Positions 3,033 to 64,000 of a DNA stretch of 64,000 bases are shown here, piece after piece; position 1 is the first letter of the stretch; every line of letters starts with the position of its first letter. The translations under genes were made by a program, and so were the position numbers. The stretch lies in assembly GCF_000143415.4 (NCBI RefSeq), contig NW_003314269.1, positions 1,681,544-1,745,543 of the forward strand. Direction: 5' to 3'. The notes beneath the pieces were generated by a model. The model saw nothing but the letters and a program-made list of their open reading frames with translations. It had not been told where the DNA came from and did no database searches. Source of the DNA: Selaginella moellendorffii. Lineage: Eukaryota; Plantae; Lycopodiophyta.

Positions 3033-4529
3033 ATGGATCGGCTGGTGGTCGTCGATCCCACAGAGGTAAGGCTCCATCTCGAGGACCACATCGATGGATC
3101 TTCGTCCCACACGGCCACTGTCCACCTCCACAGCGTCCTCCACACCATGCCCGTGGCATTCAAGATCCAGCCCATGGTCGCCAGCAAATACAGCGTCAAG
3201 CCCTCGCTGGGGATGATCCCGCCGCTGGGAGGCGTCAATCTGGAAATCTCGCTCCTCCCTAGCTCCTCCTCGTCGCGGTTCTTCAGCGTGGATGGATTCG
3301 AGGTGAAATCCGTGGTGGTCGCCGGCGCTGGGAAATCCAAGGAGTGGTTCACACCCCAGAAGCGCGTCGTCTACACCGATATCAGCCTCAAGGTCCGGAT
3401 TATCGGCGGGATCGTGCTGCGCGATGCGATAATCCGCGGCGCCATGGACGACGCCCGCCAGGTTCTTGAGAGCGGCACGAATCCGGATACCTGGAACACG
3501 CAGGGATTGACGGCGCTCCACCTCGCGATCCAGAGCCGGCGCCCCGACATGGTCCAGCTCCTGCTGGGATTCGGCGCTCGCGTGGATTCCAAGACGATGA
3601 ACGCCGACGGCCACACCCCGCTCCACTGCGCGGCGATGGTCGGCCACACCGTAATATTGGAGATGCTGCTCGCGCGCGGCGCCGATCCGGAGCGCGCGGA
3701 TTCCAGCGGCTGGCGCCCGATCCATCACGCCGCGAGCAGTGGATCCCTGGAGCCGCTAGGGGTGCTGAGCAAGATCTGCGACGTGAATGCCCCAATCGGC
3801 GACGGGAGAACAGCGCTGCATCTAGCGGCGATCGGCGGCAACGCCGATAGCGTCCAGATCCTGGCACAGAGCGGCGCCGATGTGAGCGCTAGAACGGTGG
3901 ACGGGAAGACGGCGCTCCACCTCGCGGCGACGCAGGGCAACAACGTCGCCATAGCCAAGCTCCTCATCAAATGTGGCGCCGATCGGGGAGCCGTCGATTG
4001 GAATGGACGGACGGCCTACGATGAGGCCGTTGAGTTAGGGCAGGAAAGTTTGTTTGCCCTACTCCAGGTTCCAGAGAATGTGGCCTCGCCGGCGCCGCTA
4101 GGGGATGATCTCGAAGAGCTCCTCCGCAACGCCGCCTGGTCGGGCGATTTGCGGGGCGTGAGGAGATGTCTCAAGCGTGGCGCCGCTGTGAATGCTTGCG
4201 ATCGGTATGGATGGACTGCTCTCCACTGCGCGGCATTCAAAGGCCATGCTGAGATCGTCAAGCGGCTGCTGGAGAGCTGCCAGAGCAAGGAGGAGGCGTG
4301 CGCGATCGATGAGCAGGGTTACAGTGCGCTGCATTGCGCGGTGGAATCCGGGCACCGGGAAGTGGTGAAGATCTTGGTAGGCTGCGAGATGATCGAGATC
4401 AATGGTGTGACGCGGGAGGGATTGAGCGCGCTGGATATGGCGCTGGCGCTGGAGCACGGCGGGATGGTGCGCACGCTCGTCAATGCTGGGGCTCGGGCCT
4501 GTGTGGCCAATTTGATAATCGATGAGTGA
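3033..4529 (+). CDS. VPY: VAPYRIN (MSP/VAP domain plus ankyrin repeats)
   Basis: First ATG gives MDRLVVVDP...TMPVAFKIQP...YSVKPSLGMIPPL, then WFTPQKRVVYTD...GAMDDARQVLE, followed by multiple G(R/W/H)T(A/P)LH ankyrin repeats. Confidence 0.88.
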   Translation: MDRLVVVDPTEVRLHLEDHIDGSSSHTATVHLHSVLHTMPVAFKIQPMVASKYSVKPSLGMIPPLGGVNLEISLLPSSSSSRFFSVDGFEVKSVVVAGAGKSKEWFTPQKRVVYTDISLKVRIIGGIVLRDAIIRGAMDDARQVLESGTNPDTWNTQGLTALHLAIQSRRPDMVQLLLGFGARVDSKTMNADGHTPLHCAAMVGHTVILEMLLARGADPERADSSGWRPIHHAASSGSLEPLGVLSKICDVNAPIGDGRTALHLAAIGGNADSVQILAQSGADVSARTVDGKTALHLAATQGNNVAIAKLLIKCGADRGAVDWNGRTAYDEAVELGQESLFALLQVPENVASPAPLGDDLEELLRNAAWSGDLRGVRRCLKRGAAVNACDRYGWTALHCAAFKGHAEIVKRLLESCQSKEEACAIDEQGYSALHCAVESGHREVVKILVGCEMIEINGVTREGLSALDMALALEHGGMVRTLVNAGARACVANLIIDE

Positions 4530-4639: not shown

Positions 4640-6943
4640 TCAAGAACAATCGAATGCTTCCAGCGGGTCGTGATCATCAATCTTGGAAACCAGCTCCCCG
4701 CGGCTAGCGATTCCACTCGCGAATGCGTTGGAGAGCAAGACGTAGGACGATCCACTCCTGGGCGCCAGGCGCGAGACCATCTCCGCGGCTCGCAAGCTCC
4801 CCTGTGTGTCACTGTGCTGCTTACACGCCGTCAGCAAGGCCGTCCACGCCACCGCGTCCGGGACGAAAGGCATGGTATCGATCAGCTCCCGCGCTTGATC
4901 CAGCAGCTTGAGACGCCCCAGCATGTCCACCACGCTCGAGTAGTGCTCCCGGTTCGGATCGTGGAAGAAATCCCCGACCATCCTCCGGAAGAACTCTCCC
5001 CCCCTGGAGAGCTCCCCGAGATGGCTGCAACCCGCGAGGATCGAGAGGAAAGTCACGTCGTCGGGAGAGATCCCTGCCAGGAGCATGTAGCTCAGGAGCT
5101 CCAGCCCCTGCTCGAGGTAGCCATTGTGAGCGCACGCCGCGATCGCCACTGTCCAGGAGACCTCGTCGTGCTCGGGCATGGCGGAGAAGATCGCGCGGGC
5201 CTCGCGGACGTGACCATTGCGAGCGTAGGACACCACCATGCAGTTCCAGGCGATCACGTCCCTCTGCGGCATTCGATCGAAGAAGCTCTTGGCGGAGGCG
5301 GTATGCCCCGACTGGGCATAGCCGCCCAGCATCGTCGACCAGGAGGCGAGCGTCCTCTCGGGCATCCGGTCGAAGAGCGATCGCGTCTCGGGCATCCGAT
5401 CGGCGCCGGCGAAGGAGGCCATCACCGTGTTGCAGCACACGGCATTGGTGGCGGGCATCCGATCGAAGACGCGCTTGGCCTCCGCGAGCTGCTGGTTCTG
5501 GAGGTAGCCGGCAACGAGCGCCGCCCAGGAGATCACGTCCTTCTGCGGCATCGTGTCGAAGACAGCCTTGGCTCTATCGAGCTGCCCGTCGCTGGCGTTC
5601 GCGGAGAGCATCGAGGTGGAGCACTGGAGGTCGATGGCTTGATCCGGGATGGCGGCGAATTCCCTCCTGGCGGCGTCGATCTCGCCCGCCACCGTGCACG
5701 CCACGATCACGTTCGTCCAGGAGATGAGATTCCACATTGGCATCCTCTCAAACAGCCCCCGGGACTGCTTGATCCGGCCGCTCGCCGAGTAGCCCGTGAT
5801 CATCACGTTCCAGGAGACGACGTTCCTCTGCGGCGCCCTGTCGAAGATCTCCTTCGCTTGATCCATGCTGGGCTGCCCCTCCTGGGCATACGACTGGATC
5901 ATCGTCGCCCAGGATACCACGTCGCGCTGGGGCATTCGATCGAAGGCCGCTCTCGCGAGGAAGATCTGGCTGGTCTGCGCGTAGGCCGTGATGATCGCGT
6001 TCCAAGACACGAAGTCGTGCTCGGGCGCTCGATCGAAGCGCTCCTTGGCGTCCTCCACCAGGAGATTGTCCGCGAACGCCTGGATCATCACGTTCCAAGA
6101 GACGATGTTCAAGGCTGGCATCTTGGAGAGGAGAGCTCGCGCTTCCTCCAATCGCCCGCTCTGGCTATATGTTGCTACCATCGCCGTCCATGACACCACC
6201 TCTCGCTGGGGCATCGAATCGAACACCTTCTTGGCGAGCGCTTCATCCTGGCCCTGCGCGCATCCGTCGATGATCGCGTTCCAGGAGACGAAGTTCCTGG
6301 CCGGCATCCGGAAAAACATCGCCTGCGCTACCTGGAGATTCCCATTCTGGGCATATGCGGTGATCATCGCGTTCCAGGCGACCAGATCTCTCTCCGGCAT
6401 CGTCAAGAACATCGCTCTGGCGTCCTCGGGCTTGCCACGCTTCGCCAGCGCCACAAGAATCGCCGTGGATGTGACGACGGTCCAGCGCGGGAGGAGATCG
6501 AAAACGTGCCTTGCGTGCTCAAGATCCCCGATCTTGACAAATGCGCCGATGAGGCAACTCCACGCCACGGAATCTCTGCCGCCGGGGATGCGATCGAAGA
6601 GATTCTTGGCGTCCCAGGGCCTGCCGTTGTGCGCGTAGACGGTGAGCATCGTGATCCAGGAGAACCTGTTCTTGCTGTGATCGTCCATGCCGTCGAAGAT
6701 CTCCCGCGCCTCGCGGACGCTGCCGCATTCGCCATACATGTGGAGCAGCGCATTGCATAGGAAGACGTCGGTGGAGAGGCCATGGCTCCAGATCTGGGCG
6801 TGCACGCGCCGCCCGCGCGAAATATCCCTGGAAGCGGTGCAAGAACGCACTAGCTGGACGAATTCTTGCTCCTGCCGCAATGCGATCGAGCTCTTGCTCC
6901 TGGTGGCGATCAATCGGCAGGACAAGCGCTGGCATTGCCGCAT
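4640..6943 (-). CDS. PLS-class PPR protein rich in 31-aa S-type motifs, E domain, no DYW (767 aa)
   Basis: Intronless ORF with a long run of (F)DRMPxR(D/N)VVSW motifs and an E domain (HYSSVVDMLGRLKLL...YVLLSNAF). Confidence 0.95.
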   Translation of the reverse strand: MRQCQRLSCRLIATRSKSSIALRQEQEFVQLVRSCTASRDISRGRRVHAQIWSHGLSTDVFLCNALLHMYGECGSVREAREIFDGMDDHSKNRFSWITMLTVYAHNGRPWDAKNLFDRIPGGRDSVAWSCLIGAFVKIGDLEHARHVFDLLPRWTVVTSTAILVALAKRGKPEDARAMFLTMPERDLVAWNAMITAYAQNGNLQVAQAMFFRMPARNFVSWNAIIDGCAQGQDEALAKKVFDSMPQREVVSWTAMVATYSQSGRLEEARALLSKMPALNIVSWNVMIQAFADNLLVEDAKERFDRAPEHDFVSWNAIITAYAQTSQIFLARAAFDRMPQRDVVSWATMIQSYAQEGQPSMDQAKEIFDRAPQRNVVSWNVMITGYSASGRIKQSRGLFERMPMWNLISWTNVIVACTVAGEIDAARREFAAIPDQAIDLQCSTSMLSANASDGQLDRAKAVFDTMPQKDVISWAALVAGYLQNQQLAEAKRVFDRMPATNAVCCNTVMASFAGADRMPETRSLFDRMPERTLASWSTMLGGYAQSGHTASAKSFFDRMPQRDVIAWNCMVVSYARNGHVREARAIFSAMPEHDEVSWTVAIAACAHNGYLEQGLELLSYMLLAGISPDDVTFLSILAGCSHLGELSRGGEFFRRMVGDFFHDPNREHYSSVVDMLGRLKLLDQARELIDTMPFVPDAVAWTALLTACKQHSDTQGSLRAAEMVSRLAPRSGSSYVLLSNAFASGIASRGELVSKIDDHDPLEAFDCS

Positions 6944-7002
6944 ACACTAGCCCAAAATCCTCTTACCTCTCGCTAGGGTTCTTCATTTTTAACGTTTGGC
7001 TT

Positions 7003-8252
7003 TGGAGGAAATTTGGCGAGGGACGACTTCCGGGAGATGAAAGCTCGAAGTAAGCCTTCTGGCAGGTTTCTCCAGGGATTCTGCGGCCATAACCAGCATT
7101 TGAGCGATGGAATAGCCACTGGCGGTGTCGAGCATCTTAAGGTGAGGATTTTCGTGTTCTAGAGTAGCTTTTCTTTGATTGTTTTTTCTTAACTTGTTCT
7201 TCGTTATAGAGAGAGTATCATGTTGCCGATATTAAGGATCTCACTGCAGGTTCCTATACGCGTGAAAGGCTCAACCGAGAAACCTCCTCTCGCTTCTCTG
7301 GAATCCGAAATCTCTGTGGTATCATATTTTCTTCGTGTACTTTCTTTTTGTTTTGTAACAGTTATCGTACTCAACCACTGTCTGGAGAAGCTTCGAACCA
7401 TTGGTATTTGTTTTTATAGAGAAAGATACACTTCTTTTATTCCTGTTTCTATGCAGCGAGGTGAACTTTGTAGAACCAGACTACCAAAAATATCCACGCT
7501 TTAGAGATGCATCAAAACACAGTCGGACAGTACTGCTCTAGCCATAGACTTTTGGTGGGCGTCTACACAATCTTGCGCATATTACTTGCGGAGGATTTTA
7601 ATGAGGTAAGCAAATGCTGCTCTTGACTTTTTCACAGTTTCTCTTTTGTTTTCCAGTCTTTTGGACGCCGAAAAGGTCAACACGCAACAATTGTCGATGC
7701 AATTTACTTATATTGTTCTACAGAGATCGATGCTTGGATGGAATCGTCACGTGGATGTAGAAGGTGATCTTGATGACGTACAAGGAATACAAGATCTTAC
7801 CGTGAACAGTTTGAGTCCACTAGAAACAAAACAACTTCACGTCATACTATCCTGCGTAGCGGTCGCAGTGAACAATGGCAATTGTGAGGACGATCCTGTC
7901 GCAAGTGTGTTTCTAAATACGAGCCCTCGAAGCCTTCGTCGAATCTTTCTTACCATGGTGGTAAGTGCAGGCACTGTATGCTATGTTTGTCACTAACAAT
8001 TCGTGCATTTTCAGACTACATTTCCTCGTTCACTACAAGCACTCGTATTGCATGCTCTCATTCCTGTCGCTGCAGAACGTTTGAACTCGATTCCTTCTGA
8101 AGCATCACAGTATGGTGTTGATTTAACGTTGTTGCGGCTTTGGTTTTTCACAGAGCAGAGTTCTACAAGCGCTCCTCGATAGGAAGCGCGTCAAAGGTAA
8201 AGATTCTGAAGCTATTTCGATGCTGTTAAACGGTGGTTTTGTCTCCAGTGTC
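7003..8252 (+). pseudogene. Deletion-riddled copy of the JmjC (JMJ31-like) gene
   Basis: Matches 11443-13350, but the start ATG reads TTG. The HYD exon and the PEGWFHQ segment are deleted. Confidence 0.88.
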
Positions 8253-10173: not shown

Positions 10174-10566
10174 AAGTGGCAGCAGTCAGTCCGGTAAGCA
10201 CACTTGCCATTTCCTCTTTCTCCTATTCGCAGTTACTAACTTCATTTGCTTGGGTTCGTTTTTGTATCCTCCGGACATCATCGACATCTCTCGTGTCTCT
10301 GTGTGGAAATACCTTTTTGGTGGCTGCCGAGAACAATCATGGAACAAAAACGAGATCCAAGCAAATGCCGAGATAGATGCAAACGAGATAGCTGTTACAC
10401 ACAAAACTATGCCGCTCTTCTTTAAGAAACAAGGGAAGTCTTCCCTCAAGAAAGAATTGAAAAAAAGTCTATCCATATATAAATCGAGATTGGCTAACTA
10501 ATCTAATAATCTAACAATTTCTTGAAATCATTGCATATCTTGAGATCATTCGGGAAGGAAGAGTCC

Positions 10567-11383
10567 GCTTGATCCATGCTTTTGCATACGACTGGCAGGA
10601 CACCACATCGCGCTGGGGAATTCTATCGACGGCTGCTCTCGCGAGGAAGATCTGGCTGGTCTGCGAGTAGGCCGTGCATGACACGAAGTCGTGCTCGCTG
10701 GATGGAAGCGCTCCTTGGATTCGTCCACCAGGAGATTGTCCGCGAACGCCTGGATCATCACGTTCCACCAGACGATGTTCGAGGCCGGCAGCTCGCGCTT
10801 CCTCCAAACGCCCGCTCATGTCCATGACACCACCTCTCGCTGGGGCATCGAATCGAACACCTTCTTGACCAGCGCTTCATGGACATCCATCGATGATCGT
10901 GGTCCAGGAGACGAAGTTCCTGGCCAGCATCCGGAAAAACATCGCCTCCGCTACCTGGAGATTCCCATTCTGGGCATATGCGGTGATCATCGCGTTCCAG
11001 GCGACGAGATCTCTTTCCGGCATCGCCAAGAACATCGCTCTGGCGTCCTCAGCCTTGCCACGCTTCGCCAGCGCCACGAGAATCGCCGTGGATGTGACGA
11101 CGGTCCAGCGCGGGAGGAGATCGAAGACGTGCCTTGCATGCTCAAGATCCCCGATCTTGACAAATGCGCCGATGAAGCAACTCCACGCCAAGGAATCTCT
11201 GCCACCGGGGATGCGATCGAAGAGATTCTTGGAGTCCAAGGGCCTGCCGTTGTGCGCGTAGACGGTGAGCATCGCGATGCAGGAGAACCTGTTCTTGCTG
11301 TGATCGTCCATGCCGTCGAAGATCTCGCGCGCCTCGCCGACGCTGCCGCATTCGCCATAGCGATCGGAGTGGCATTGCCGCAT
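10567..11383 (-). pseudogene. Truncated, frameshifted copy of PPR 4640-6943
   Basis: Same start (MRQC) and the same NRFS..MLTVYAHNGRP motifs, with a ~150-bp 5' deletion, frameshifts and loss of the 3' half. Confidence 0.9.
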
Positions 11384-11442: not shown

Positions 11443-13383
11443 ATGGCGGAAAATTGGCGCCCACCGTCGAGGGACGAATTCCGGGAGATGGAAGCTCGAA
11501 ACATTCCCGTGGTAAGAGGCGCGTCGATTTGTTTCGATTGTTAGAGCTTCTGGCAGGTTTTTCCAGGGATTCTGCGGCAATGGCCCGCATTTGAGCGGTG
11601 GAATCCAGCCACTGGCGGTGTCGAGCATCTTAAGGTGAGGATTTTCGTGTCCTAGAGCAGGGATTAGACCGCTTCTCAAGGAAATCGTAGGAGAACCTCT
11701 AGTGCAAGCAATGGTCAGCAGCGATGGCTCTACGTTCTTCGGTGATATTAGAAGCCATGAAAGAGTTTGTATTTTTTCTTTGATTCCTCCTCTTTTGTTC
11801 TTAAACTGGTTCCTAGGTAGCGTTGCCTTTCAGAGAATATCTAGACATGGTTTTGTCACCTGGAGAGCACAACGATCACTTTTATCTGGCACAGGTTAAG
11901 ATTTACTCTTGTTGTCCGTGTTGCGGATATTAAGAATATCACTGCAGGTTCCTATACGCGTGAAAGACTCAACCGAGAAACCTCCGCTCGCTTCTCTGGA
12001 ATCCGAGATATCCCTGGTATCATATATTCTTCGTCTACTTTTTTCTTTTTTTGTGAAACTTATCATGCTCAGCCAGAGTTCCTGGACGAGGATGCGGTCT
12101 CAAACATCAACCTTTGGATGAGTTCGACGTCTTCTCGGTCAAGCATACATTATGATCCATACCACAATGTTCTTGGAGTCGTGACGGGTCAGAAGAAAGG
12201 TAGAGCTTTTTCATGCGTGGCATTTTTCAGTGTTGTATTTGTTGCAGTTACTCTGTGGCCTCCTGATGCGGCGCCATATCTGTACCCCAAGCCACTGTAT
12301 GGAGAAGCTTCGAACCATAGGTATTTGTTTTTATAGAAAAAGAGACACTTCTTTTATTCCTGTTTCTATGCAGCGAGGTGAACTTTGTAGAACCAGACTA
12401 CCAAAAATATCCACGCTTTAGAGATGCATCAAAACACAGTCGGGTTCTGGTAGTCGATGCTGGCAGTGCAGTTTTTATACCAGAGGGCTGGTTCCACCAA
12501 GTGGACAGTGCTGCTCTAACCATTGCTGTAAACTTTTGGTGGGCGTCTAAACAATCTTGCGCATTCGACTCGCCCATGGATGCATATTATTTGCGGAGGA
12601 TTTTAGTGAGGTTAGCAAATGTTGCTCTTGGCTTTTTAACAGCTTCTTTTGTTTTCCAGTCTTTTGGACGCCGAAAAGGTCAACAAGCAACAATTGCCAA
12701 TGCAATTTACTTATATTGTTCTACAGAGATCGATGCTCGGATGGAATCCTCACGTGGATGTAGAAATTGATCTTGATGACGTGCAAGGAGCAGAAGATCT
12801 TACCGTGAACAGCTTGAGTCCACTAGAAACAAAACAACTTCACGTCATACTATCCTGCGTAGCGGTCGCAGTGAACAATGGCAATTGTGAGGACGATCCT
12901 ATCGCAAGTGTGTTTCTAAATACGAGCCCTCGGAGCCTTCGTCGAATCTTTCTTACCATGGTGGTAAGTGCAGGCACTGTATGCTATGTTTGTCGCTAAC
13001 AAGTTGTGCATTTGCAGACTACATTTCCTCGTTCACTAGAAGCACTCGTATTGCATGCTCTCAGTCCTGTCGCTGCAGAACTTTTGACAAAACAGTTTGA
13101 AGAGATGGACTCGATTGCTTCTGAAGCATCACAGTAAGCAAGTTTTAGGATGCTGTTGATTTTACGTGGTTATGGCTTTGGTTTTAACAGAGCAGAGTTC
13201 TACAAGCGCTTTTATAGTGTTTTTGACGACTCCAGTGTCGCAATGGCTGCGCTCCTCGATAGGAAGGAAGCGTTCGCATCAAAGGTAAAGATTCTGAAGC
13301 TATTTCGCTGCTGTTAAACGGTGCTTTTGTCTCAGGCTTTGGACAGTGTCATGGAGAAATTTCTGGGATGTAAGCTTCACTGA
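11443..13383 (+). CDS. JMJ31: JmjC-domain 2OG/Fe(II) oxygenase, JMJ31-like (multi-exon)
   Basis: Spliced reading: NLWMSS..SSIHYDPYHNVLGVVTGQKK|VTLWPP..LYPKPLYGEASNHS..VFIPEGWFHQVDS..AVNFWW, with the HxD...H triad and GT-AG introns. Confidence 0.88.
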
Positions 13384-45261: not shown

Positions 45262-47621
<2,360 letters not shown>

Positions 47622-48836: not shown

Positions 48837-50595
48837 TTACATGATTGAACAGGCATTGGGATTTTCTTCACTGAACATAGTACTGAATCCAGTGTTGGCA
48901 GGAGGAACGCGGTCGTGGTACGCGTAGCTGTAACCTGGGTGGTAGCTCTGCTCGGTGGTATAGAACTTTTGCTCATGTCCGCGGTCCTGATTTCGGTAAT
49001 TTCCTTCAGGTTGTTGTCGATACCTTGGCTGCTCGTAGTCATCCTCGAACGAGACATACTTCGGAGCTACCTGCGACTTTTGCTTCTTCTGGTTGCTATT
49101 GGACTTTCGATCACCGTCGAAGCGAGAGGTATCCATGTACGGTGATTTGTTGTGCTCATTGCTGTAAGTGGAGCCTGATGACTTGTGCTCATTGTTGTAG
49201 GTGGAGGCGCCATATCCCGACTTTTTAAACTCGTGGCCGGACTGCTTATGATGATTACCGTAAAGTCCAGTGGAATTCTCGTCATCGTAGCCTGAACGGA
49301 TGTTGGGCTTCTTGACACTGTCGCTGAAGTCACTGTCGTCTTCCGAGCCAGAATGTGAGAGATCATCGTACTCGGACCGGGTATCGACCTTGTAGTTGGC
49401 CTTCTTTTCCTTCGCCGACTTGAAACCTTCGGACTTTTGGCTCTTCGGGGACTTGAATTCGCCATAGTGATCAAACTTCTCGTTCTTGGGGGACTTGGAA
49501 TCGCCATAGAAGTCGGACTTCTGCTGGTGCTTTTGAGGCTTGACATCGCCATAGAAGTCGGACATTTGCTGGTTCTTTTGAGGCTTGACATCGCCATAGA
49601 AGTCGGACTTCTGCTGGTTCTTTTGAGGCTTGATATCATCGTAGAAGTCGGACTTCTGCTGGTTCTTTTGAGGCTTGGCATCGCTGTAGAAGTCGGACTT
49701 TTGGTTCTTGGAGGACTTGAAGCTGCCAAAGAACGAGTCAGACTTCTGGTTCTTTTGGTTCTTCTGGGGCTTGGCATCGGTGTGGAAGTCGGAGGACTTT
49801 TGGCCCTTGGGGGACTTGAAATCACCGTAGCCGCCGGAATTCTGGTTCTTCTGAGGCTTGAGGTCGCCGTAGAAGTCGGACTTCTGGTTCTTTTGAGGCT
49901 TGAGATCGCCGAAGTAGTCGGTCTTCTGACTTTTCTGGGGCTTGAGATCGCTGTAGAAGTCGGACATCTGGTTTTTGGGGGACTTGAAATCGCCATACAA
50001 GTCGGACTTGCCTCCGTCCTTGCCGTAAAACTGCATTTTGGGTGAATGCTCGTAGTCGGAGGCTTCAGACAAGTATTCGGGCTGAGGATGGAAGGAACGG
50101 TCGTGTTCGTTCGACTTGTTGCTGCTTTGGAAGCTTTTGTTACCGTTGTTTCCCTTCGGACCTCCTTTCGAAGCTTTGCTCGGGGTGGTCATGACAGGCT
50201 GAGATCCATACAGGTTCTTGTTGCCGTTGCCGTTTGGATAGTTCCACAGCTCCACAGGCTTCCCAGTTTTCTTCACCGCTTTCAAGAGCTTCGACGGATC
50301 GACAAATCCGGTTACTTTGATCCATTCTCTGTTTTTATCTACATCAACTGAGGCGGTGCCTGGACGAAGAAAGCAATGTGTGAGGAGGCCACACTGAAGA
50401 TCACTCGCTATAGCTCACCTTTGACGTTAAACAGTGCCTTCTTCACTCTCCGCTCGCAGCCTTCGCAGTGCAGTCCGACTTTGAGTATCACGGTCTGCAA
50501 GTTTTCAAGCTGAGTCAGGAAAGCGAGTTCGAGGACGACCTGCTTCTTCTTACCTGCATGCTGGTGGTGGTGGTGGTGGCTATGGTGTTGGTCAT
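48837..50595 (-). CDS. HIPP with a long K/Q/S/D-rich repeat insert, 3 exons
   Basis: TVILKVGLHCEGCERRV, IKVTGFVDP..VELW and C-terminal FSEENPNACSIM (CaaX). The start MTNTIATTTTTSMQ is inferred from intron phase. Confidence 0.9.
49440..50010 (-). repeat. Coding minisatellite, 39/42-bp units (SDFYGDxKPQKNQ(Q)K), about 13-14 copies
   Basis: Repeated agaagtcggacttct...ttttgaggctt units. Confidence 0.9.
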
Positions 50596-53042: not shown

Positions 53043-56000
53043 TCAGCTTACTCGCAGGTTCTCAAATCTCTCCTGTAAAGTTTTGTCTCCTCCACTGGAA
53101 AACAAGCTGCCCAGCGCTTGAGCTGCTTGGAGAGCCTGCGTTTGCTTCGTACTCACTCTTTCGAGTCCTTCTAAGTTTGGTGCCGGCGATCTCAGCAAGG
53201 AATGTAGCCAGCCGTGTAGAAACGCCGCACGCTAGACACAAAAAGAAGCACTAAGTTTGCGAGCTGTAAGTTGTGGAAAAAGCTCACCTTGTGTAAGAAG
53301 TCCTTGAGCGAGCAGTAGTCCTCAGGGCTTGCATATGAAAGGATTTGGAGGAGTGTTGTGTCTAGCTGTAAAATCGGCAATCAAAAGTTGATGGGAAAGA
53401 AAGAGAGGTTAAAAAGGAGAAAGAAAGACCTGCTCTGATAGTGTTGACATGTATTTAAAACTCGATGGCGCAGTTTTGCCAGAGTCTAGTGACTCGAGCG
53501 CATGGACTAGCCCGTGAAGGACATCACCAAAGGATTCCCCGAAGTCTACATCCATACCAAAGTCTTAGTAATTGATAAAACACATGGAGATTTCACATTA
53601 CCATCCCGACAGCTGGGAACAGCCAATGCAGATGCCGCGTGTATACGGATTTTGAAGTTTCCGGAATCGCGTAAAAGCAGCAGCAAGATGCTAAACACCG
53701 AAGAAGACCTGTTGAGGAAGACAACACTGGTTATGGTACTGTAGTGAAAACGAAACCAAGAAACTCACCATGGCATCTCTGGTAGAGAAATGGTTCTGTT
53801 GAGAAATAAATTACCGAGTGCGTGGCACACATTCCATTGAACCTGAAAAAAGCACGTGACTGGCACAATTGAGGCAATAAACGCTGGTCAAAATACCTTC
53901 ACGTTGCCTGTTGTGATGCACGACACCAGCGTCTGGACCATGCGCCCCAGCCATAAAAGTGGTGGACTCCGGTTTTCGTCGGTCGCAACGCCGTCAGAGA
54001 AGTCTGCAAACTTCGCAAGGTTGCCCAATGCTCTGACGGCGTTTGCGCGGACCTGGAAAGACCTCAGAGTTTGTCTGCATAGACAAACCACCTACCTTAT
54101 CTCCATCTTTAGCTGCCTTCAGTGCAACCTCTGCCAAAGTAGTCAATAATTTCGAGTCACGGGCAATAGCTGTTATAAAAGCAGCATAAGAAGCATCAAT
54201 ACATTAACATGGACATACGTACGTGGGAATCCATTTTCAAAGCTTTTGCAGAAGGCGTCACAGATATTTGCTAAAGCCCAGCAAGACGTGATTCGTACCT
54301 GCATCATTTTCAGCTAGTTACAGCTGTGGAGTTAATCACGGGCAAAAAGAAACTAACCGATAAGGCAGCATCTGAGATAGCAGCCTGGATAGTGGCAACG
54401 ACGGAGTTTAATCTTTGATTCCTGGACGGAACTTGTTAGCAGAATAACTAAGCAAGCAGCTAGACCACCTTTCAACGATCTCACTACAGCCCACTAAAAC
54501 TCCAATTGCTCTGGAAGCTGCCGAGCGTACAGATGCTGTATCATCTCTAATAGCCGCATTTATCTGAAAAGAACAAGAATCAGACAAAGACGCCCGGAAT
54601 TTTCAGAGTTTGCTTACGACAGTGGACAGTATGTACTCCTGGTGTTTCTCTGATAAGTTAGAGTAGACGCCTGGTGTTAGACCGGCAAAACAGGTTAATG
54701 CAGCTGCTCGGACCTGTAAGCCCTGGTGAGCACGAGGACAAAAAACACGGCAACAACTAACCATAGGGGTACCGTGGTACAGTACTAGTGGAAGAAACTT
54801 ATTCATGACTTCAAGCCACTGAGATGCTGCAGGATCGAGCTTATCGGGGACATTCTGAACAGTTCTTCCAGTAGCAGTTAGCAGCTTTATTGGTTGAGGC
54901 ACCAAAGACGGACTCGGCGATGTTGTTGGAAAGTCGAACATATCGTCTGCACCGTTGAAACCAGATAACACTCGCAGCAACTCGTCTAAAAGCTGCCATT
55001 TTCCAATGATCACAAACCCGAAAACCAAATGCTTCCCGTGTACCTTTAGCGAATGATATACAGTTTTTTCATCCACGGCCCGAAAATTCCCGACTGGAAA
55101 TGGAACCTCAGTAATATGTGTAGCGCTTTCATGCTCTATGACTTCGTGAACCACCTCCGCTAGTTCATTCCAGTAAAGAGAAGCCAAAGTAGAGTGACTG
55201 TGGACAGCAGCCTTCAATGCCTACACAGTTTTAGACGTGAGGCAACATGCATGAGCACAGAAAACCTTTTACCTGGAGAGCTTCGATACGAACACCTGAA
55301 AATGGTGACGCTCTTGCAAGATAGATTAAATTTGCTAGTACTGACTTTTTAGAAACTGCAAGTACTAGTATTAGAAAATGGCTAACTACAAATAATCAAG
55401 CCTCACCTTGATTCTGCTCGAGTATAGAGCTCAAGACTTGTGACGATCCTGAAGAAGCCGCCAAAGCTACAGATAAACAGCTAAGTCCTGGAACCTGCTC
55501 ATTGAAAAAGAATCAGTCATGTTGACAACTGCAGACTTCCTCACCAAAAGTGTCTGATCGGAAGAGGGTGTAAGCTCAAATATTCTTTTGTGTACAGTGT
55601 TGATAACGTCATTCAGTACTCCTATTGGAAGACGATCGAATCTGTCAAATTTTGTAGCAAAAGAAAAACAATATTTTGAGAAGATAACTATGAAACAAAG
55701 AAAGCTTACGGGCTAGAAGATACGAGTAGTGACAAGGCTTTTAATATCGCAACAAGAACGCCAGATTGAGACTCATTTGAAACCGAATGAAGCAGTCCTA
55801 AGAAATGACGATCCAGTAAGCCCCATTTTAAAGTCAAATCCTGAGCATGTACCTGTATAAAGTTGGACAATGATCTGCCCAAGGGATGTGGACAATGTTG
55901 TAAACGAGCCGGCTTTTCCCGAGTCCTTGTACTCTGCTACTTGGAGAAAAGCTTTGGCTGGACCTTCCAATAAAGCAGAAATCGTAGACGCTGCAGCAAG

Positions 56001-57726
56001 ACGGGTCTACACTACGCGCTAGTTCAATTTCAAACGTAAGAAAAACCAATATGTACCTTTGAAACTGGATCAAAAATTAGAGTTGTTACCAATGTTGGTT
56101 GATACAGACTGCATTATCCACGATGAAACTGAGTTACAAACCTGTTTATTAATCAAAAATAAGATTTTAAGTCGATTAACTTACCGTGGATGTAAAACGT
56201 TATGAGTTGGTAGCAGTAACGTCCAATGTGCATGCAGAGATTTCGGGTCAGCTCGAGCTATGGCCTGCATAAGCACAAAAAAAAAAAAGAAAAAAAAAAA
56301 AAACAAGAAATCAAAACAACATAAAAGAATAGCTGCGTACTTGGATACAAAGAATTGCGTTTGTCCGAGCCTTCGAGCTTCTGAATTGGTCAGTCTCTTG
56401 CGAATTATCGTTATCACTTTGTTCCGAATCTGAAAATAGCGTTCGTTTGTCTGAGTCCAAGCTTGGACTGCTAGACTCTCCACCATCTTGCATCCGAGAA
56501 CGCAAATGTGGAGGCCTGTACAAACTGCTGCCTTTGCCTTTCAAAACTTCTTGAGGTGCTGTCTGTGAACTTCGAGGTGATGGAACTGTTGCATCGGGGA
56601 AAGCTCGAGTGCGATTTCCGGGAAGACCGTATGACACAAACATCCGCAGCACGGCCACAAAACCACCGATCTGCTAAAAAATCAGTACGAAAACCAAAAC
56701 CTGGCTTTGAATACTCACGTTGTCATCAAGGGGAGCTTTAGCATCAGAGAAAACAATATGCAGGGCACGTAAGATTGCGGCGTAATACCTGCACATAATT
56801 GTGAATCAGGTTAGAAAGACACCGTACTTAGTTCACAAACCTGGAAGCCGCGGTCTCTTCTAAAAGTTCCACTCCAACCTGGTCCAGCACTTTGCGAAAA
56901 GCCTGGCGATGACACGAGTGGTTACCTACAAATTTTCTACTGATCAAGGCTAACCTGCACGACTTTTTGCCAGGTATCTTTGGTAACAAGAGATCCAGCC
57001 CGAGTAAAGACATTCGCAATAGCAGTGTAAATGCTGGAATCAAATCGCCCTCCTTTACGTGCTCTGACTGAGTTGCGCGTGGACGCCACCAACGGCACAA
57101 GTCCGAGCACAAGAGCGTTTGCTTCGTCGGATGATAGATGCTGTCCATGACCGTGAACGAAGAACCTGAAACAAAAAAGCTTTAAAACGGAAAAACGAAA
57201 TGCGAAAGAACCTACGCAAGAGCGTTGACAGTCTCAAAGACGTGATCGCAAGGATGGTTCTCGAGGCCAGCCTTCTGGATGCTCGACACTCCCTGCTCAA
57301 TCGCTCCGCGAAGAAAACTAAAAACCTGAGCAGCCGACTCCTTGCGAAATTCGAGCTGGGCGGAGGATATCAAATCCACCACCTGGAAGAAAGGGAAACA
57401 TCGCACCAAAGGAAACAAGAACACGAAGAAACTAGATTACCAGAATGGAAGCTTTCCTGAGGGCCACATTGTCACTCACGAACTTGGACGCCGCGTCTAA
57501 CAGCGCCAAGATGTCTCCCAGCGCCTGAGAAAGATCGAACAGGGGACAATGTAGACGATCTATAATCCAATACACACACCTCTTGCGATGGAATCTCGAG
57601 AGACGAGCGCGCTAGCGCCGGCGCCTGGCCCAGAATCTCCTGCACAGCAGCGGCCTCGTCGAATCCGCGACGTAGGCCTCCAAATGCGCTCCGCCATGCC
57701 CTAATCCTCGCGCTGGGGAAGGCCAT
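53043..57726 (-). CDS. HEATR6: HEAT-repeat protein 6-like (DUF4042), many exons
   Basis: AWRSAF, SSKARTNAILCIQ|AIARADPKSLHAHWTLLLP, SFTTLSTSLG, VRANAVRALGNL, GNVK|VQWNVCHAL, NFKIRIHAASAL. Confidence 0.87.
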
Positions 57727-57993
57727 TGCCACCGTCGCAGCGCCTCAGCCATGCTCCATAATATAAACCCTAATTCCATGGCACATATAGAGATGAAAGA
57801 AAGAGAGCTATCGAGGAGAAGCTTGGCAATGGCATGATCAAGGCGCTCTCTTCCATATTTCCAGCGACCATCAAACACTACTCTTCTAGTGATCGTACTC
57901 GGCCAGAACCAACGGCTAGGATTGGCCCATACAAACGAGCGCTCCTGATTGCCCTATTTTGTTTGAGCGCAAGGAAAGATTTGAACTAAGGCT

Positions 57994-60385
57994 ATGGCGG
58001 ACGACGCCACCGTCGCGGCTGTGGCGAGTCGCGCCGATCGATTCAGCCGGATTGCCAAGGTTGTAAGGAGGGATTTGGATTGCTACGCTGAGGCTGATGG
58101 ATTATCGGCGCTGGTGGTGAGGGGAGGTACTTGCGCTTCTTCGTCTTCCTCCCTCCAGACGCTGGAGCCGCCATGGATCGCGCGGCGGCGGCGGAGGGAG
58201 ATGGCGGCTCTGGATCAGGAGAGGAGGGAGAGCGAGCATCAGGCGAGCGTGAGGCAAGTGGTGGAAATGGCGGTGGGGATGGGAGAACAGGTTGATGCCA
58301 TGAGGAGGCAATTGGAGGAGCAAAATCGGCAGCTCAAGGCGCTCACAGTGGGTCACTGTGCTCAGGTAAATCTTCGTTTCTTCCCGATAGCAAAGCTCTC
58401 GATTTTTTTTCTTGCTTGATTGAATGGCTTTCTTCTTCTACCTTGTCTTGGAAGTTTTCTTTTTACGCGTGAAAATGCTGTGCTTGGCGATTTGTCGCTC
58501 TTTTTCTTGATGATCATCACGTATGCAGTATCCAATGCTTTCGATTGTTTCTTGAGCGTATGGTTTCTTCTTCTACCTTGTCTGGGAGTACTAGTCTGTG
58601 TTGTTCGTGAAAGTTTACGCGTGAAATGCTGTGTTTGGCACTATGTTGCTCTTTTTCTTGATGTCATCAGGTATCTCAATACTTACAACATTTTCGCTTC
58701 GATTCGTTAAAACCTTTGGAGCTGATTGTGGTGTTTCTTCTCTTTTTTTGATCTTCCAGACAAGCATCCAGCAGCAGCTACTAGACATGCTCGCCACGGT
58801 GCAAACAAAACAGCAGCGTTCCAAGTCTCCCCCCAGGCCCGCTTATATTCACACAACACACGGGCAAACGCCGCAAGAGTATCACACGCTTACATGGCTT
58901 CACAACAATCACAGACAAGCTGGTAAGCATTATAGGCATCCGGCTCACGGTTTTCGTCCGTTAAGAAGATCATCTATCCACAGTGACCTGCACAAGTATG
59001 ACTCGGGAAGTGACAGGACCAGGACAACTTTTGGAGGAACGCGTAGGCGTGGCCACAGAAGAAGTCCGCCAGTGTCCGTTCCAACCGAGCCTGCGCCAGA
59101 GTCTGCTAGAAGTGTAGAGAAAGCAAGAAAACCTTCTCCCAAAAAGACCAAGAAGGTGCCTCTCGTTGCGCTCCTCTATGCAAAATGTAAGCGAAGGTGG
59201 CAAAAGCAATCCGCACGAAAACGGGAGAAGACTGCTCGTCAAGGTCGGTTTTCTTTGGTTTTCTATCTTCGTTAAATTCTTTTTTACTTTCTTCGCAGCT
59301 GCAACCACATCTTCAGCCGCAACTCAGCCGAAACATAACAATGCTAAGTGTCATCGTCATCGCAGCCGCACCGAGCATCATCGGTAAGTAATCTCTTTCA
59401 GAGTCTTTCAGACATTTTCGTTCTAACGCCTTTCTTAGACCGATAATCGAAGAGAGGCATGAAGTACTGGATCTTAGAAATGACAACGCGAAGCAGCTTG
59501 AGGATAAAATTTTAGACTCGATGCTAGAAGTGCTAAAACATGTAAGTGAAGTTTGCCGAGTTCTAAACTCAGTTTTCCTTTCTTCCCCTCCCAGGAAGAC
59601 GAGTTGAAGCAACGGTGGCTTGTATCCGACCAAGACGAAGGGAAGGACATTGGAAAATCTATACTCGATGAATTGATGAATGAAATGGCTCCAAGGTTGG
59701 ACGAGCTTTTACTCTTTCTTTAAAAGGTTCTAAGACTTTCTATACAGAAATCCTGAGAAGACCATGGAAACCATCTCGTAAGTTTTTAACCATCCCTTGC
59801 ATGGTTCTCGCTCAAAGTGAAATTGGCTGCAGTCAAACGAAAGAGTTTCCAGCAAGGCATCACAGTACACTGGCGTAAGTTTTGAGTTTTCACGATCTCT
59901 GCTCACATAAACTCTCAGGCAAACAAAAGAGGATCTAACAATGCACCGAAGCATTGATAATTTAGTGGTGACCGAGTTGTAAGTTTGAATTTTTCACCAT
60001 TCGCGATCTGAGCTCACAAAAATCTCGCAGGCAAACAAAGCAGGAACCAACAAAGATTGACAGTATAATGACCGAGATGTAAGTTGGTTTTTCACTATTC
60101 GCGATCTCAGCTCACAGAAATCTCGCAGAGAGGAACCGACAAGGCATCGAAGCATTGGCAGCACAGTGGGGAACGACTTGTAAGTTTTGAGTTTTCCTAT
60201 TTGACACTCACAGAAAATATCGCAGGCAAACAAGGGAGAAGCCAAGGAATGAAAAGCACGAAAAACTACTTGCCATGATCATGGACGAACAAGTGGAAGA
60301 AATCTCTGCCGAGCTCTTGCTCTTCTGCGACGACTTTGTAGAGGATATATACTCGTCGGAGTTTGCATACGCGGATGATAAGTAA
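57994..60385 (+). CDS. Multi-exon coiled-coil protein, putative KIAA0753/Moonraker-like
   Basis: Consistent GT-AG exon chain from ATG 57994 to TAA 60385. Terminal motifs DRFSRIAKVVRRDL and EISAELLLFCDDFVEDIYSSEF. The gene is well supported; the identity is tentative. Confidence 0.65.
58406..58680. repeat. Tandem ~135-bp duplication inside intron 1
   Basis: atgg(c)tttcttcttctaccttgtct..tttacgcgtgaaa..gctctttttcttgatg occurs twice (~58424 and ~58560). Confidence 0.8.
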
Positions 60386-60450
60386 CCAGCAAGCTCGTCT
60401 TTTATTACCGAGAACACACCTCCACAACCAGCACACTGCGGGTAGTATCA

Positions 60451-62702
60451 CTACTGCAACAAAGTCTTGATAATCGACTTGACATTGAGCCTCCTCAAGT
60501 CATGGTAACTCTGACCGCATCCAAGAAACATGATCGGTGCGCCAGAAACATAGACCATGGACAATGCCGCTCCCACCTGCGACACACAAACACACGTTGA
60601 TAAGAGAAGCTCGCAAGCAAGCATGAAAGATAGAACTGAGACCTTGTCATCGATGGTATCGAACTTGGTGAGAAGTATCCCGTCAATCGGCTTTCGCTTC
60701 GCCGTTGCCGAGAGATCAGCCAAAGTCTGCAAGGGGAAACTCTCATCAGAGGAAGAAACCAGAAAAAAAGAAAAAGCCACCGACTTGATTGAATTTGGAG
60801 AGCTGGTCCACAGCCTCGTTGCCCACAAGCGCTTCTCCGACAAAGAGCACCAGATCTGGCTTGTTTACGTTGATCAGATTCGCAAGGGCCCTCATAAGAG
60901 GCTCGTTATCCTGGAAGAAAAAAACATATGTATTGTAAGAACGCAAAGAAAACAACGAGAAGCAAAGCTTTGAAAAACTTGCCTGCATTCGACCTGCAGT
61001 ATCAACCAGCACAACGTCGTGCTTAGTTTTAGCAGCTGTGGCAATTGCCTCCCGGGCCACATTTGCTGGATCTTTTTCGTATCCTTTCTCGTACAGCGTA
61101 GTTTGGAGCCTTTTGGCGTGCGTACGGAGCTGCTCCACAGCTCCCGAACGAAATGTGTCGCATGCGGCTATCAAGACACTCAGTTCGTGGCTTTTAAGCC
61201 AATAAGCCACCTGGTAACGAGCAAGCATTAGTCAAGTAGCAAATACAACAATGGCAGAACCTTGGCAAGACTTGTAGATTTCCCCACTCCATTAACTCCC
61301 ACAAATACGATCACATAGGGGCGACCTTCGTCCTTTGCCGACTTTACATCTCTCAGGATGTCAATGGAACGCTTTGGAGTTAGTATTCGCAGTAAAGCGT
61401 CTCCCATCGCCTCCTGAGTAAACAAACAAAGTTAAAGCGCTCGATGGAGCCAAGACTTGCAACGCAAACGCACCTTTACAGCAGATGATACTCGAGTAAA
61501 CGTTCCAAGCTTCTTGCCGAGAAGACTTGCAGCAACAGACTCGCATATCTTTTCAGCAATCTCTTCAGCCTGCCAAAGCAAAGTTGGCGAGTATACAACC
61601 CAAGAACGTAAACCATACGTACCACATTCTTGGTCATTAGACGATCTTTCAGCGCCTTCATCGCGGGCACCAAATCCGCCTTCTCAAGAGCCGCCTTCCC
61701 AGTGACGCTGCGCAAGAAAAACAAAAATCGAGAGAAACATAAAGTCTCTAGCCAAACTAAAGAAAAGTACCTCTGGAAAACGCTCGAAAACCATCCTTTC
61801 TTGGCAGGAGCCTTCTCGTCCTTCGCCTCCTCGTCATCGGACTCCTCGTCCTCCTCGTAGTCCACCAAACTTTTCCCGTGAACCTCCACAACCTCCTCGT
61901 CGTTGGTGTCACGAACAGGCTCGGAGTAGTCCAGCTTCCCAGTCGCTGGAGCGTCCCACGGCTTTCTATCCTGCTTCACTTTCTTCTTGGGATCCTCCTT
62001 CTCCTTCTTCACAGCGTTGGTCTTCTTTCCCCCCTTCGCTTTCAGCTTCTGGAGCTTGCTCCGATCGAAGGCCACCTCCACCGGCTTGGACTCCTCATCG
62101 CTGCTGCTCAATTTCCCATTTGTCACTCCATTCTCGTGGCCAGCCTTGTCCACAACAGCGGCAGGCTTGTGATCAGCAGCACTGTCATCCTCTTTCCCAT
62201 CCTTTTGCCCCTTTGTCCCTGCCGATCCCTTGACCGATCCGCGAAGCACAGTTCCCCCTCGCAGATCGGTGTTCTTGCTGCTTCCATCCTCGATCTTCCT
62301 GTTTGCCTTGTTAAGTCCCTTGTTGGCCTCGCCGCGAGCCAGCGCCTCCTTCTCGAGCTGCCGATACACCTCATCGAAATCCCGATACGAGGCCTTCCGG
62401 GGAGAATACACCGCCGAGAAGTCGCGCTTCACCATGGCCAGCAGCTCGTCAACATAGAGGAGCTGCAAGAATTGCTGGTAGACGGCCACGAACACGAGCC
62501 CCAGCTCGTTCTGGAACGTCCACTTGAGCGTGTAGGACGCACCTGGGGCATCGTAGCGGAAGGATCGATCGCCGCTGCGCTCCTCGAGCAGGCACGACCG
62601 GATCAGCGTGTCGATCGGCGATCCCTTGAGCGCGTTGCCGATCTCCTTGCAGCTCCACAGGATGAGGCCGCCGCGCGTGAAGATCAAGAGCTGTTCCAAC
62701 AT
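60451..62702 (-). CDS. SRPRA: Signal recognition particle receptor alpha subunit
   Basis: [19 protein letters not shown] domain, [38 protein letters not shown]. Confidence 0.96.
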
Positions 62703-62855
62703 CCTGTCCTTGCCCAAGAACCCTAGAAATATTCCACGCAAGAAAATGGGACCCTTTTATTATCGACCCAAGAACCCTAGAGAATATACCATTACACACG
62801 GGAAGAATCTTTCTTTTCTTTCACACACATTTATTTGTAACACACAGGCAAACTT

Positions 62856-64000
62856 TCACGCGGCGATTTGGACGATCCAGTTGGAGAAGCTTGACACGGC
62901 TCCTTGGAGGCGGCAAAGCTGGACGTCTTCGGGACTTCCAGCCTCCATCGCGACGCTCTGGATTTCCATCTCCACTGACGCATCCACGCGCTTAACTTTG
63001 CTCTCACTCACCAGGAGCGCCGCCACTTCATCGGCCATCCTCGTCAACGCAAGCCTGCTAACAAGATCGATTAGTCTCACTCGAAGAGAAGAAAAACAAA
63101 ATCTACACGAACTATACCTCAGTAGCTTCGAAGCTTTAGCTTCCCACAATCGTTGCGACTCCTTGAGCCTCTCGAAGAAGTCCTTGCACGCACACATCTT
63201 GGCTTCCACAGGAGATTCCTACAAAACGAGGGAAATACCAGCCTTTAGAATGTGGAACCGAGATTGGTTTTAGAAAGAACGTACCAGCTCTGTATCATAA
63301 GCCTCGCTGTTCTCGAAGGACCCCAGGAGAGTAAAGAAGTCTATGTACAAGCCGGAGCCAATGTCCCAGTTCTCGATCTCCATTTTATGCGCATCCATCT
63401 GGCTCGCGTAGCTCCAAATCTCTTCCTTTTTCCCTGTGTTCAAGTGGTGATGACCATAGCTTACCAAAAACCAATTGCTTACCATTTAGCAGCAAAGATG
63501 CGGACACCTTGGTCATAAACACGACGTGAGCCTCTTGCCACATGAAGCTTTTGAGGTAATGCACAAGGCTCTTCTCAAAGTCTCCCCGGTACAGCCAGTA
63601 GATAGCCTGAAAAACATCCTAAGAGTCAGAAGAACACGCACTGAGCGCACATCGCTTACCAAAGTCTCGTGCAGCCACTCCGGTGGAATACCGAGTTCGT
63701 CCTCTATAAACTTCTGCTGAACCTCCGAGTTGCTCCAAACTTCACAGTACTGGCTCAGTATATCCTTGATCACCTTCTCGTGCAAACCTGTAGTTTCCGG
63801 GCACACTGGCATATGGAGTACCACGTAAACTGCCCAATGTATCAACTTGGCGGCAAGAAGCTGGGAGATAAAACTCATGTCCAGCGCGTAGGAATCCGAC
63901 TGATTCAAAACGCCAATTGCCTGGAGAACTTCCTTCTGATGCCAAGCGGCCCGGTGATCCAGACGATCAAATGTAGATGCCGAGGAGGAAAACATCTTGT
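62856..64000 (-). CDS. NUP96: Nucleoporin Nup96 (MOS3/SAR3-like), 3' part
   Basis: AWHQKEVLQAIG, HWAVYVVLHMP, ILSQYCEVW, LGIPPEWLHE, IENWDIGSGLYIDF. Confidence 0.9.

Follow-up and report, generated by a model that had tools for sequence, protein, structure and literature searches.

Whether land plants possess a counterpart of the animal centriolar protein Moonraker (MNR, also called KIAA0753 or OFIP) is the question raised by a gene of the spikemoss Selaginella moellendorffii, which lies at 57994-60385 on the plus strand of the DNA analysed here (the window: 64,000 nucleotides of contig NW_003314269.1, assembly GCF_000143415.4, positions 1,681,544 to 1,745,543). MNR is part of the DISCO module (MNR, OFD1, FOPNL and CEP90) and is located at the centriole wall and at satellites. 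It recruits the other three members of the module and also binds to microtubules, and the tethering of the OFD1-FOPNL-CEP90 module outside mammals has been described as unclear (PMC9484695). The corresponding Pfam family, PF15718, is regarded as Metazoa-specific (PMC13358043), and one paper describes OFIP as conserved in Paramecium (PMC5374602). The original prediction for this locus proposed a plant homologue of MNR from three motifs placed in the same order as in the human protein. The motif at the extreme C-terminus has held up, being in register with the end of PF15718 and with the last exon of a vertebrate MNR gene, and the N-terminal and central motifs found no support. Our preferred reading, to which we give a probability of about 0.45, is that the gene encodes an adaptor with an MNR-type tail, a putative binder of FOP-family proteins. 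That the tail is related to the MNR tail is likewise a tentative claim, a shade short of even odds, and orthology of the whole protein to MNR is less likely than that.

The resemblance is carried by the last of the eleven exons of the gene (exon 11, 60226-60385, 53 codons plus the stop). Pfam scans were run exon by exon, on exons of at least 20 residues and with E-values up to 10, and exon 11 was the only one to match MNR. Its residues 16-46 aligned with columns 934-964 of PF15718, a profile of 964 columns, with 11.2 bits and an E-value of 0.093, and the motif alone gave 11 bits over columns 936-964 (E ~0.1). The spikemoss tail thereby lines up with the last and most conserved terminal columns of the profile. 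By our own calculation, HMMER charges about 19 bits for a local start anywhere in a model of 964 columns, so the tail by itself has a raw resemblance of around 30 bits, in line with the pairwise figures given below.

The pairwise comparisons were made with a true MNR gene. A degenerate DNA pattern (~47 bits) of the residues common to both tails matched only two stretches in the metagenome collection, on contigs Ga0065711_1005330 (L001) and Ga0181612_163171 (L002), which hold the same vertebrate Moonraker gene in two assemblies, presumably as host DNA. Pfam identifies the matched gene as MNR, and L002 holds exons for profile columns 296-964, the last of them (12880-12993) matching columns 932-964 with 54.7 bits. 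We read L002 as a non-primate vertebrate, not as human, because a check with two conserved Alu segments found no Alu heads in its 14.5 kb, its G+C content is 35-39%, and its tail differs at five positions from the human motif given in the original prediction. That human 28-mer is itself a true MNR motif (PF15718 columns 937-964, 50.9 bits).

Between the two tails, 60266-60364 of the window and 12880-12978 of L002 align without a gap over 33 residues, of which 11 are identical and 23 similar, and each segment has a net charge of -10. As read from this pair, every hydrophobic position is kept. Both tails have an A-E-L, a core of cysteine, acidic residue, aspartate and aromatic residue, and a final S-E-F, after which the stop codon follows six residues later in the spikemoss and five in L002. 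With tblastn, the tail matched the last exon of L002 at 30 bits (E 1.5e-5 within the 14.5-kb locus). The Smith-Waterman score of the tail pair was 66, with a z-score of 10.3 against shuffles, and all other exon pairs had a z-score of 4.3 or less. In a six-frame translation of the window the next best 28-mer scored 24, against 65 for the tail. An exact convolution gave a per-register probability between 2e-11 (general composition) and 7e-9 (composition of the motif itself). If MNR is fixed as the family, the number of chance matches expected in a proteome of 25,000 proteins is 2e-4 to 0.07 at any position and 5e-6 to 2e-3 at a C-terminal end. The tail match is thus confirmed as more than chance, as judged by these sequence statistics, provided that the family is fixed beforehand; it is ordinary if the family is not.

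The gene behind the tail was modelled by pairing GTAAG-like donor sites with the first AG that follows a pyrimidine tract, a first-pass model built from sequence only. Its exons lie at 57994-58365 (exon 1, 124 codons), 58760-59243, 59299-59383, 59439-59541 and 59595-59695 (exons 2 to 5, the last in frame over 59595-59693), followed by five mini exons of 30, 42, 60, 48 and 51 nt at 59748-59777, 59833-59874, 59919-59978, 60031-60078 and 60129-60179 (exons 6 to 10) and by exon 11, all on the plus strand. Joined with no adjustment, the eleven exons give 1536 nt without a stop, i.e., 511 codons, and an in-frame stop stands four codons upstream of the start ATG. The introns are mostly short and T-rich, all ten have GT-AG borders, and nine measure 44-55 nt and the other 394 nt. 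Their G+C content is 0.33-0.45, compared with 0.40-0.62 for most exons (0.51 overall). All five mini exons have lengths divisible by three and lie in phase 2; by chance all five lengths would be in phase in only ~0.4% of cases, and this speaks for a constrained reading frame. With their introns, the mini exons form an array at 59748-60225, a tandem duplication of an exon-plus-intron unit of ~100 bp whose peptide product is a degenerate repeat, QTKE...R-H-R-S-I. Two of the copies are more similar in the 3' parts of their introns (93% over 41 nt) than in their exons (~75%). An Rfam scan of 56500-61500 found no family. The gene at 57994-60385 is confirmed as real, so far as the DNA letters by themselves can establish it.

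The joined protein has an isoelectric point (pI) of 9.2 by a composition script and falls into regions of differing character. Exon 1 (residues 1-124), modelled alone and from a single sequence in AlphaFold2, reached a mean predicted local distance difference test score (pLDDT) of 81, with helices predicted at 4-34 and, beyond a disordered linker, at 60-123, the second of them long, confident and coiled-coil-like. Residues 125-313 (exons 2-3, 58760-59383) are very basic (pI 10.9-11.6), with many Ser, Pro, Arg, Lys and His residues; no Pfam family matched them, they are probably disordered, and they form the candidate microtubule- or nucleic-acid-binding part. Residues 314-382 (exons 4-5, 59439-59695) are acidic and, by composition, helical, and they carry the central motif of the original prediction. 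The mini-exon repeat makes up residues 383-458, and exon 11 makes up the acidic residues 459-511 (pI 4.3). AlphaFold2 models exon 11 as a single helix over exon residues 4-43, with a core pLDDT above 90, and the terminal S-S-E-F-A-Y-A-D-D-K stretch as non-helical; the MNR-type motif (60266-60364) is the 33-residue acidic helix ending in S-E-F, six residues before the stop.

A working scheme for such a protein follows what is described for its putative animal counterpart. For KIAA0753, the C-terminus is described as both necessary and sufficient to bind FOPNL (PMC13507227, which cites Chevrier 2016). FOP-family proteins have an N-terminal TOF-LisH pair in common, and land plants keep the family member TONNEAU1 (PMC6070722). 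We infer that the final acidic helix of the spikemoss protein and the C-terminal helix of animal Moonraker are elements of one kind. The spikemoss helix would then dock a FOP-family protein through the latter's TOF-LisH dimer; in animals this partner is FOPNL/FOR20, and in the spikemoss it might be a FOR20-like protein, OFD1 or TONNEAU1. The basic region would then carry the partner to microtubules or to the centriole wall. The most plausible setting would be the sperm-forming cells, which build centrioles de novo. Possibly the protein is related to MNR but has diverged so strongly that only the partner-binding tail is left. The likeness in layout goes somewhat beyond the tail, as both proteins have a basic middle rich in Ser, Pro and Lys with helical flanks, and in both the terminal acidic helix of ~33 residues has the same hydrophobic register, sits in the last exon and ends 5-6 residues from the stop. 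Unlike MNR, the spikemoss protein is about half as long (511 residues against the ~964 columns of the profile), and its mini-exon repeat is specific to the lineage.

Several results weigh against kinship with MNR, and one group of them concerns the rest of the protein. Neither the first 40 residues nor the central motif matched anything in Pfam; the N-terminal motif was thus left without an MNR match, and the human string given for it is too short to verify. The central motif, in exon 4, was compared with the L002 exon at 6850-7020 (columns 727-788, 43.1 bits). It faces a genuine MNR exon in the right order, with a z-score of 4.0 (1 of 300 shuffles) among 81 comparisons, but pairs that are out of order score as high, namely exon 10 with the exon at 812-1096 (columns 296-372, 131.4 bits) and exon 3 with that at 10337-10720 (columns 856-934, 106.7 bits). 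The central similarity is therefore at noise level, and the motif was rejected as evidence. An intron position common to both genes beside this motif was also considered and rejected, since the alignment is ambiguous and its best path places the motif elsewhere. The remaining exons of L002 lie at 2189-2731 (columns 369-441, 62.6 bits), 3786-4013 (445-515, 52.7 bits), 5030-5551 (516-573, 66.5 bits), 6218-6424 (670-704, 36.9 bits) and 8023-8163 (788-815, 35.5 bits). When the joined spikemoss model was compared with the L002 exons covering columns 296-934, i.e., with the tails removed, a long colinear local alignment scored 73, compared with 52 +/- 9 in shuffles made within windows (p ~0.02-0.035). 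Under stricter gap costs this alignment was unremarkable, and permutation of the block order gave a p of 0.07. We read this signal as a like order of compositional regions, not as demonstrated homology. The best-conserved block of MNR, columns 856-934, which outscores its neighbours by far in the last third of the vertebrate gene, has no colinear counterpart among the spikemoss exons. Its similarity to exon 3 (z-score 4.0) is out of order and consists of low-complexity residues, and the mini-exon repeat occupies its place in the spikemoss.

The tail itself also invites caution, and the possibility that its resemblance arose by chance in a lineage-specific, fast-evolving disordered and helical protein, perhaps a nuclear one given its basic clusters, is a serious one, though we think it doubtful. 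The check proposed at the outset, a profile match of the terminal motifs, returned 11 bits where the gathering score of PF15718 is 27, with an E-value of ~0.1, and nothing at the N-terminus, i.e., no significant hit. Two unrelated families, Mre11_C_bact and TFIID_20kDa, score as well as or better than MNR on exon 11. Acidic helices yield chance matches of 12-14 bits in the PDB sequence set, where the best for exon 11 reached 14.2 and 13.1 bits, and phmmer gave exon 11 against the concatenated vertebrate exons a similar score (14.5 bits, E 0.36 at the size of that set). As the phmmer score is at chance level, the significance of the tail rests on its anchoring from C-terminal end to C-terminal end and on biological plausibility. 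By our own Karlin-Altschul arithmetic, the whole protein compared with one vertebrate proteome would give an E-value near 0.6 for such a match, which falls to ~2e-4 per gene when both segments must lie at the C-terminal end. We estimate that, for a genome compared with some 20,000 possible partner families, chance would produce a few pairs anchored in this way, and far fewer than one (<<1) with a centriole protein that has no known plant relative. On these expectations the overall odds are near even, not high. What speaks against chance is that the match is anchored at both C-terminal ends and in register with the most conserved columns, that the partner family of the matched protein is present in the lineage and the organism builds centrioles, and that in a very large DNA collection the pattern of common residues had no other matches than true MNR genes.

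The searches for relatives bear on the same question and on whether the gene works at all. Nothing related was found in any collection searched, which counts against kinship with MNR and in favour of a chance resemblance. Word searches with exon 1, a stretch of exon 2 and exon 11 were blank within their scope of proteins 0.55-1.75 times the query length, which excludes the full-length product. Against 1.84 billion representative proteins exon 11 had no match at E 0.001, not even its own product, and a query of 52 residues is weak in so large a set, in which vertebrate MNR itself would score an E-value of ~100 or worse. Atlas feature searches with exons 11 and 1 were blank, as was a metagenome tblastn scan with exon 11, and a PDB sequence search with exon 11 and the C-terminal exons of vertebrate MNR returned chance matches only, there being no MNR structure in that set. 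The missing self-match of exon 11 suggests that the locus is unannotated or that its annotated product lacks this exon, and the locus seems to be missing from public protein sets, which hold no protein derived from its transcript. Such blanks would also be expected if the locus were not a working gene but unexpressed or in decay, with its open frame left over. We regard this as very improbable, since an open frame of 1536 nt, spread over 11 exons (five of them in-phase mini exons) and interrupted by ten canonical introns, would hardly persist without selection, and the sperm-specific genes of this species are poorly sampled (bioRxiv 10.1101/2021.07.25.453666). The same source reports that land-plant basal-body proteins evolve fast and calls the Selaginella sperm-tissue RNA data insufficient. 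It also offers a parallel in land-plant BLD10/CEP135, a centriole protein of flagellate plants that is too diverged for standard searches and whose Selaginella model had to be rebuilt manually; BLD10/CEP135 is an unrelated protein, and the analogy is one of detectability only.

A different kind of relative would be a TRM-like protein (TRM, TON1-recruiting motif) whose tail is a variant of the M2 motif and recruits TONNEAU1 to the cortical microtubules of ordinary cells, with no particular tie to centrioles. In plant TRMs and in human CEP350 (CAP350) the C-terminal end is an M2 motif, which binds TON1/FOP (PMC4357431, PMC6300067, PMC12197291); all 34 Arabidopsis TRMs have this C-terminal TON1-binding motif, and a typical TRM is microtubule-associated (PMC6300067, PMC12197291). 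In CEP350 the M2 motif recruits FOP, and in yeast it binds the plant protein TON1 (PMC4357431). By analogy, the spikemoss protein would resemble these as a microtubule-associated, largely disordered protein ending in a short helix that binds TOF-LisH (PMC4357431, PMC6300067). The order of the two parts, basic region first and partner-binding helix at the C-terminus, fits the TRM layout as well. The TRM motifs are covered by three Pfam families, as we take it, namely DUF4378, VARLMGL and DUF3741, with M2 tied to DUF4378. None of these was matched on any exon at E-values up to 10, unlike MNR, so the spikemoss protein is without the other TRM motifs (M1, M3-M6) at the Pfam level, and the profile scans favour MNR over the TRM-associated families. 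Nor did any angiosperm protein reach E 0.001 against exon 11. We therefore consider a TRM-like identity improbable.

The original prediction is partly supported; it holds for the tail, whose resemblance to the terminal helix of MNR is genuine and in register, and fails at the profile threshold (11 against 27 bits) and at the block of columns 856-934, for which no counterpart was found. Because both of these tests failed, the gene is not filed as a member of the MNR family. That it is the land-plant orthologue of Moonraker, acting in sperm-forming cells, we consider unlikely on the sequence evidence; the preferred reading remains an adaptor with an MNR-type tail.

The genes around the locus have no relation to cilia. 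The gene studied lies tail to tail with a minus-strand gene for SRP-receptor alpha (SRP-alpha_N and SRP54 GTPase domains), beyond which lies Nup96, the two housekeeping genes together spanning 60451-63995 (-). Upstream are another housekeeping gene, for an FtsH-type AAA protease (46308-47588, -), and a repeat-rich open reading frame at 48837-50285 (-) of 482 residues, mostly degenerate K-P-Q-K-N-Q-K-S-D-F-Y-G-D repeats. This frame matched no Pfam family and, in its first-ATG form, no exact protein record; an exact look-up of a neighbouring open reading frame of 451 residues was also without a record. Closer to the gene, exon-like open reading frames at 54603-55217, 56181-56658, 56828-57148 and 57472-57732 outline a multi-exon gene on the minus strand, and its exon at 54603-55217, the sole one scanned, had no Pfam match. 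As the start of this gene seems to lie ~260 bp upstream of the ATG at 57994, a short divergent promoter is possible, and the two genes may use it in common.

The OFD1-FOPNL-CEP90 module positions the distal appendages of centrioles and is conserved from ciliates to mammals, and the MNR tether is functionally established only in mammalian cells. If the reading given here is true, the spikemoss protein would be the first plant candidate for a tether of this distal-centriole module, in a family that has been treated as animal-specific, and the locus may exemplify the sperm-specific plant genes that annotation has overlooked. It would also point to a common docking principle, a C-terminal helix with a TOF-LisH dimer, that links MNR-FOPNL, CEP350-FOP and TRM-TON1. 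Should the gene prove to be an orthologue, its product would tether OFD1, FOR20/TON1 and CEP90 to the de novo centrioles of sperm-forming cells, and the MNR tether would not have been added in animals but would be ancestral to eukaryotes, its sole durable part being the tail that binds the partner.

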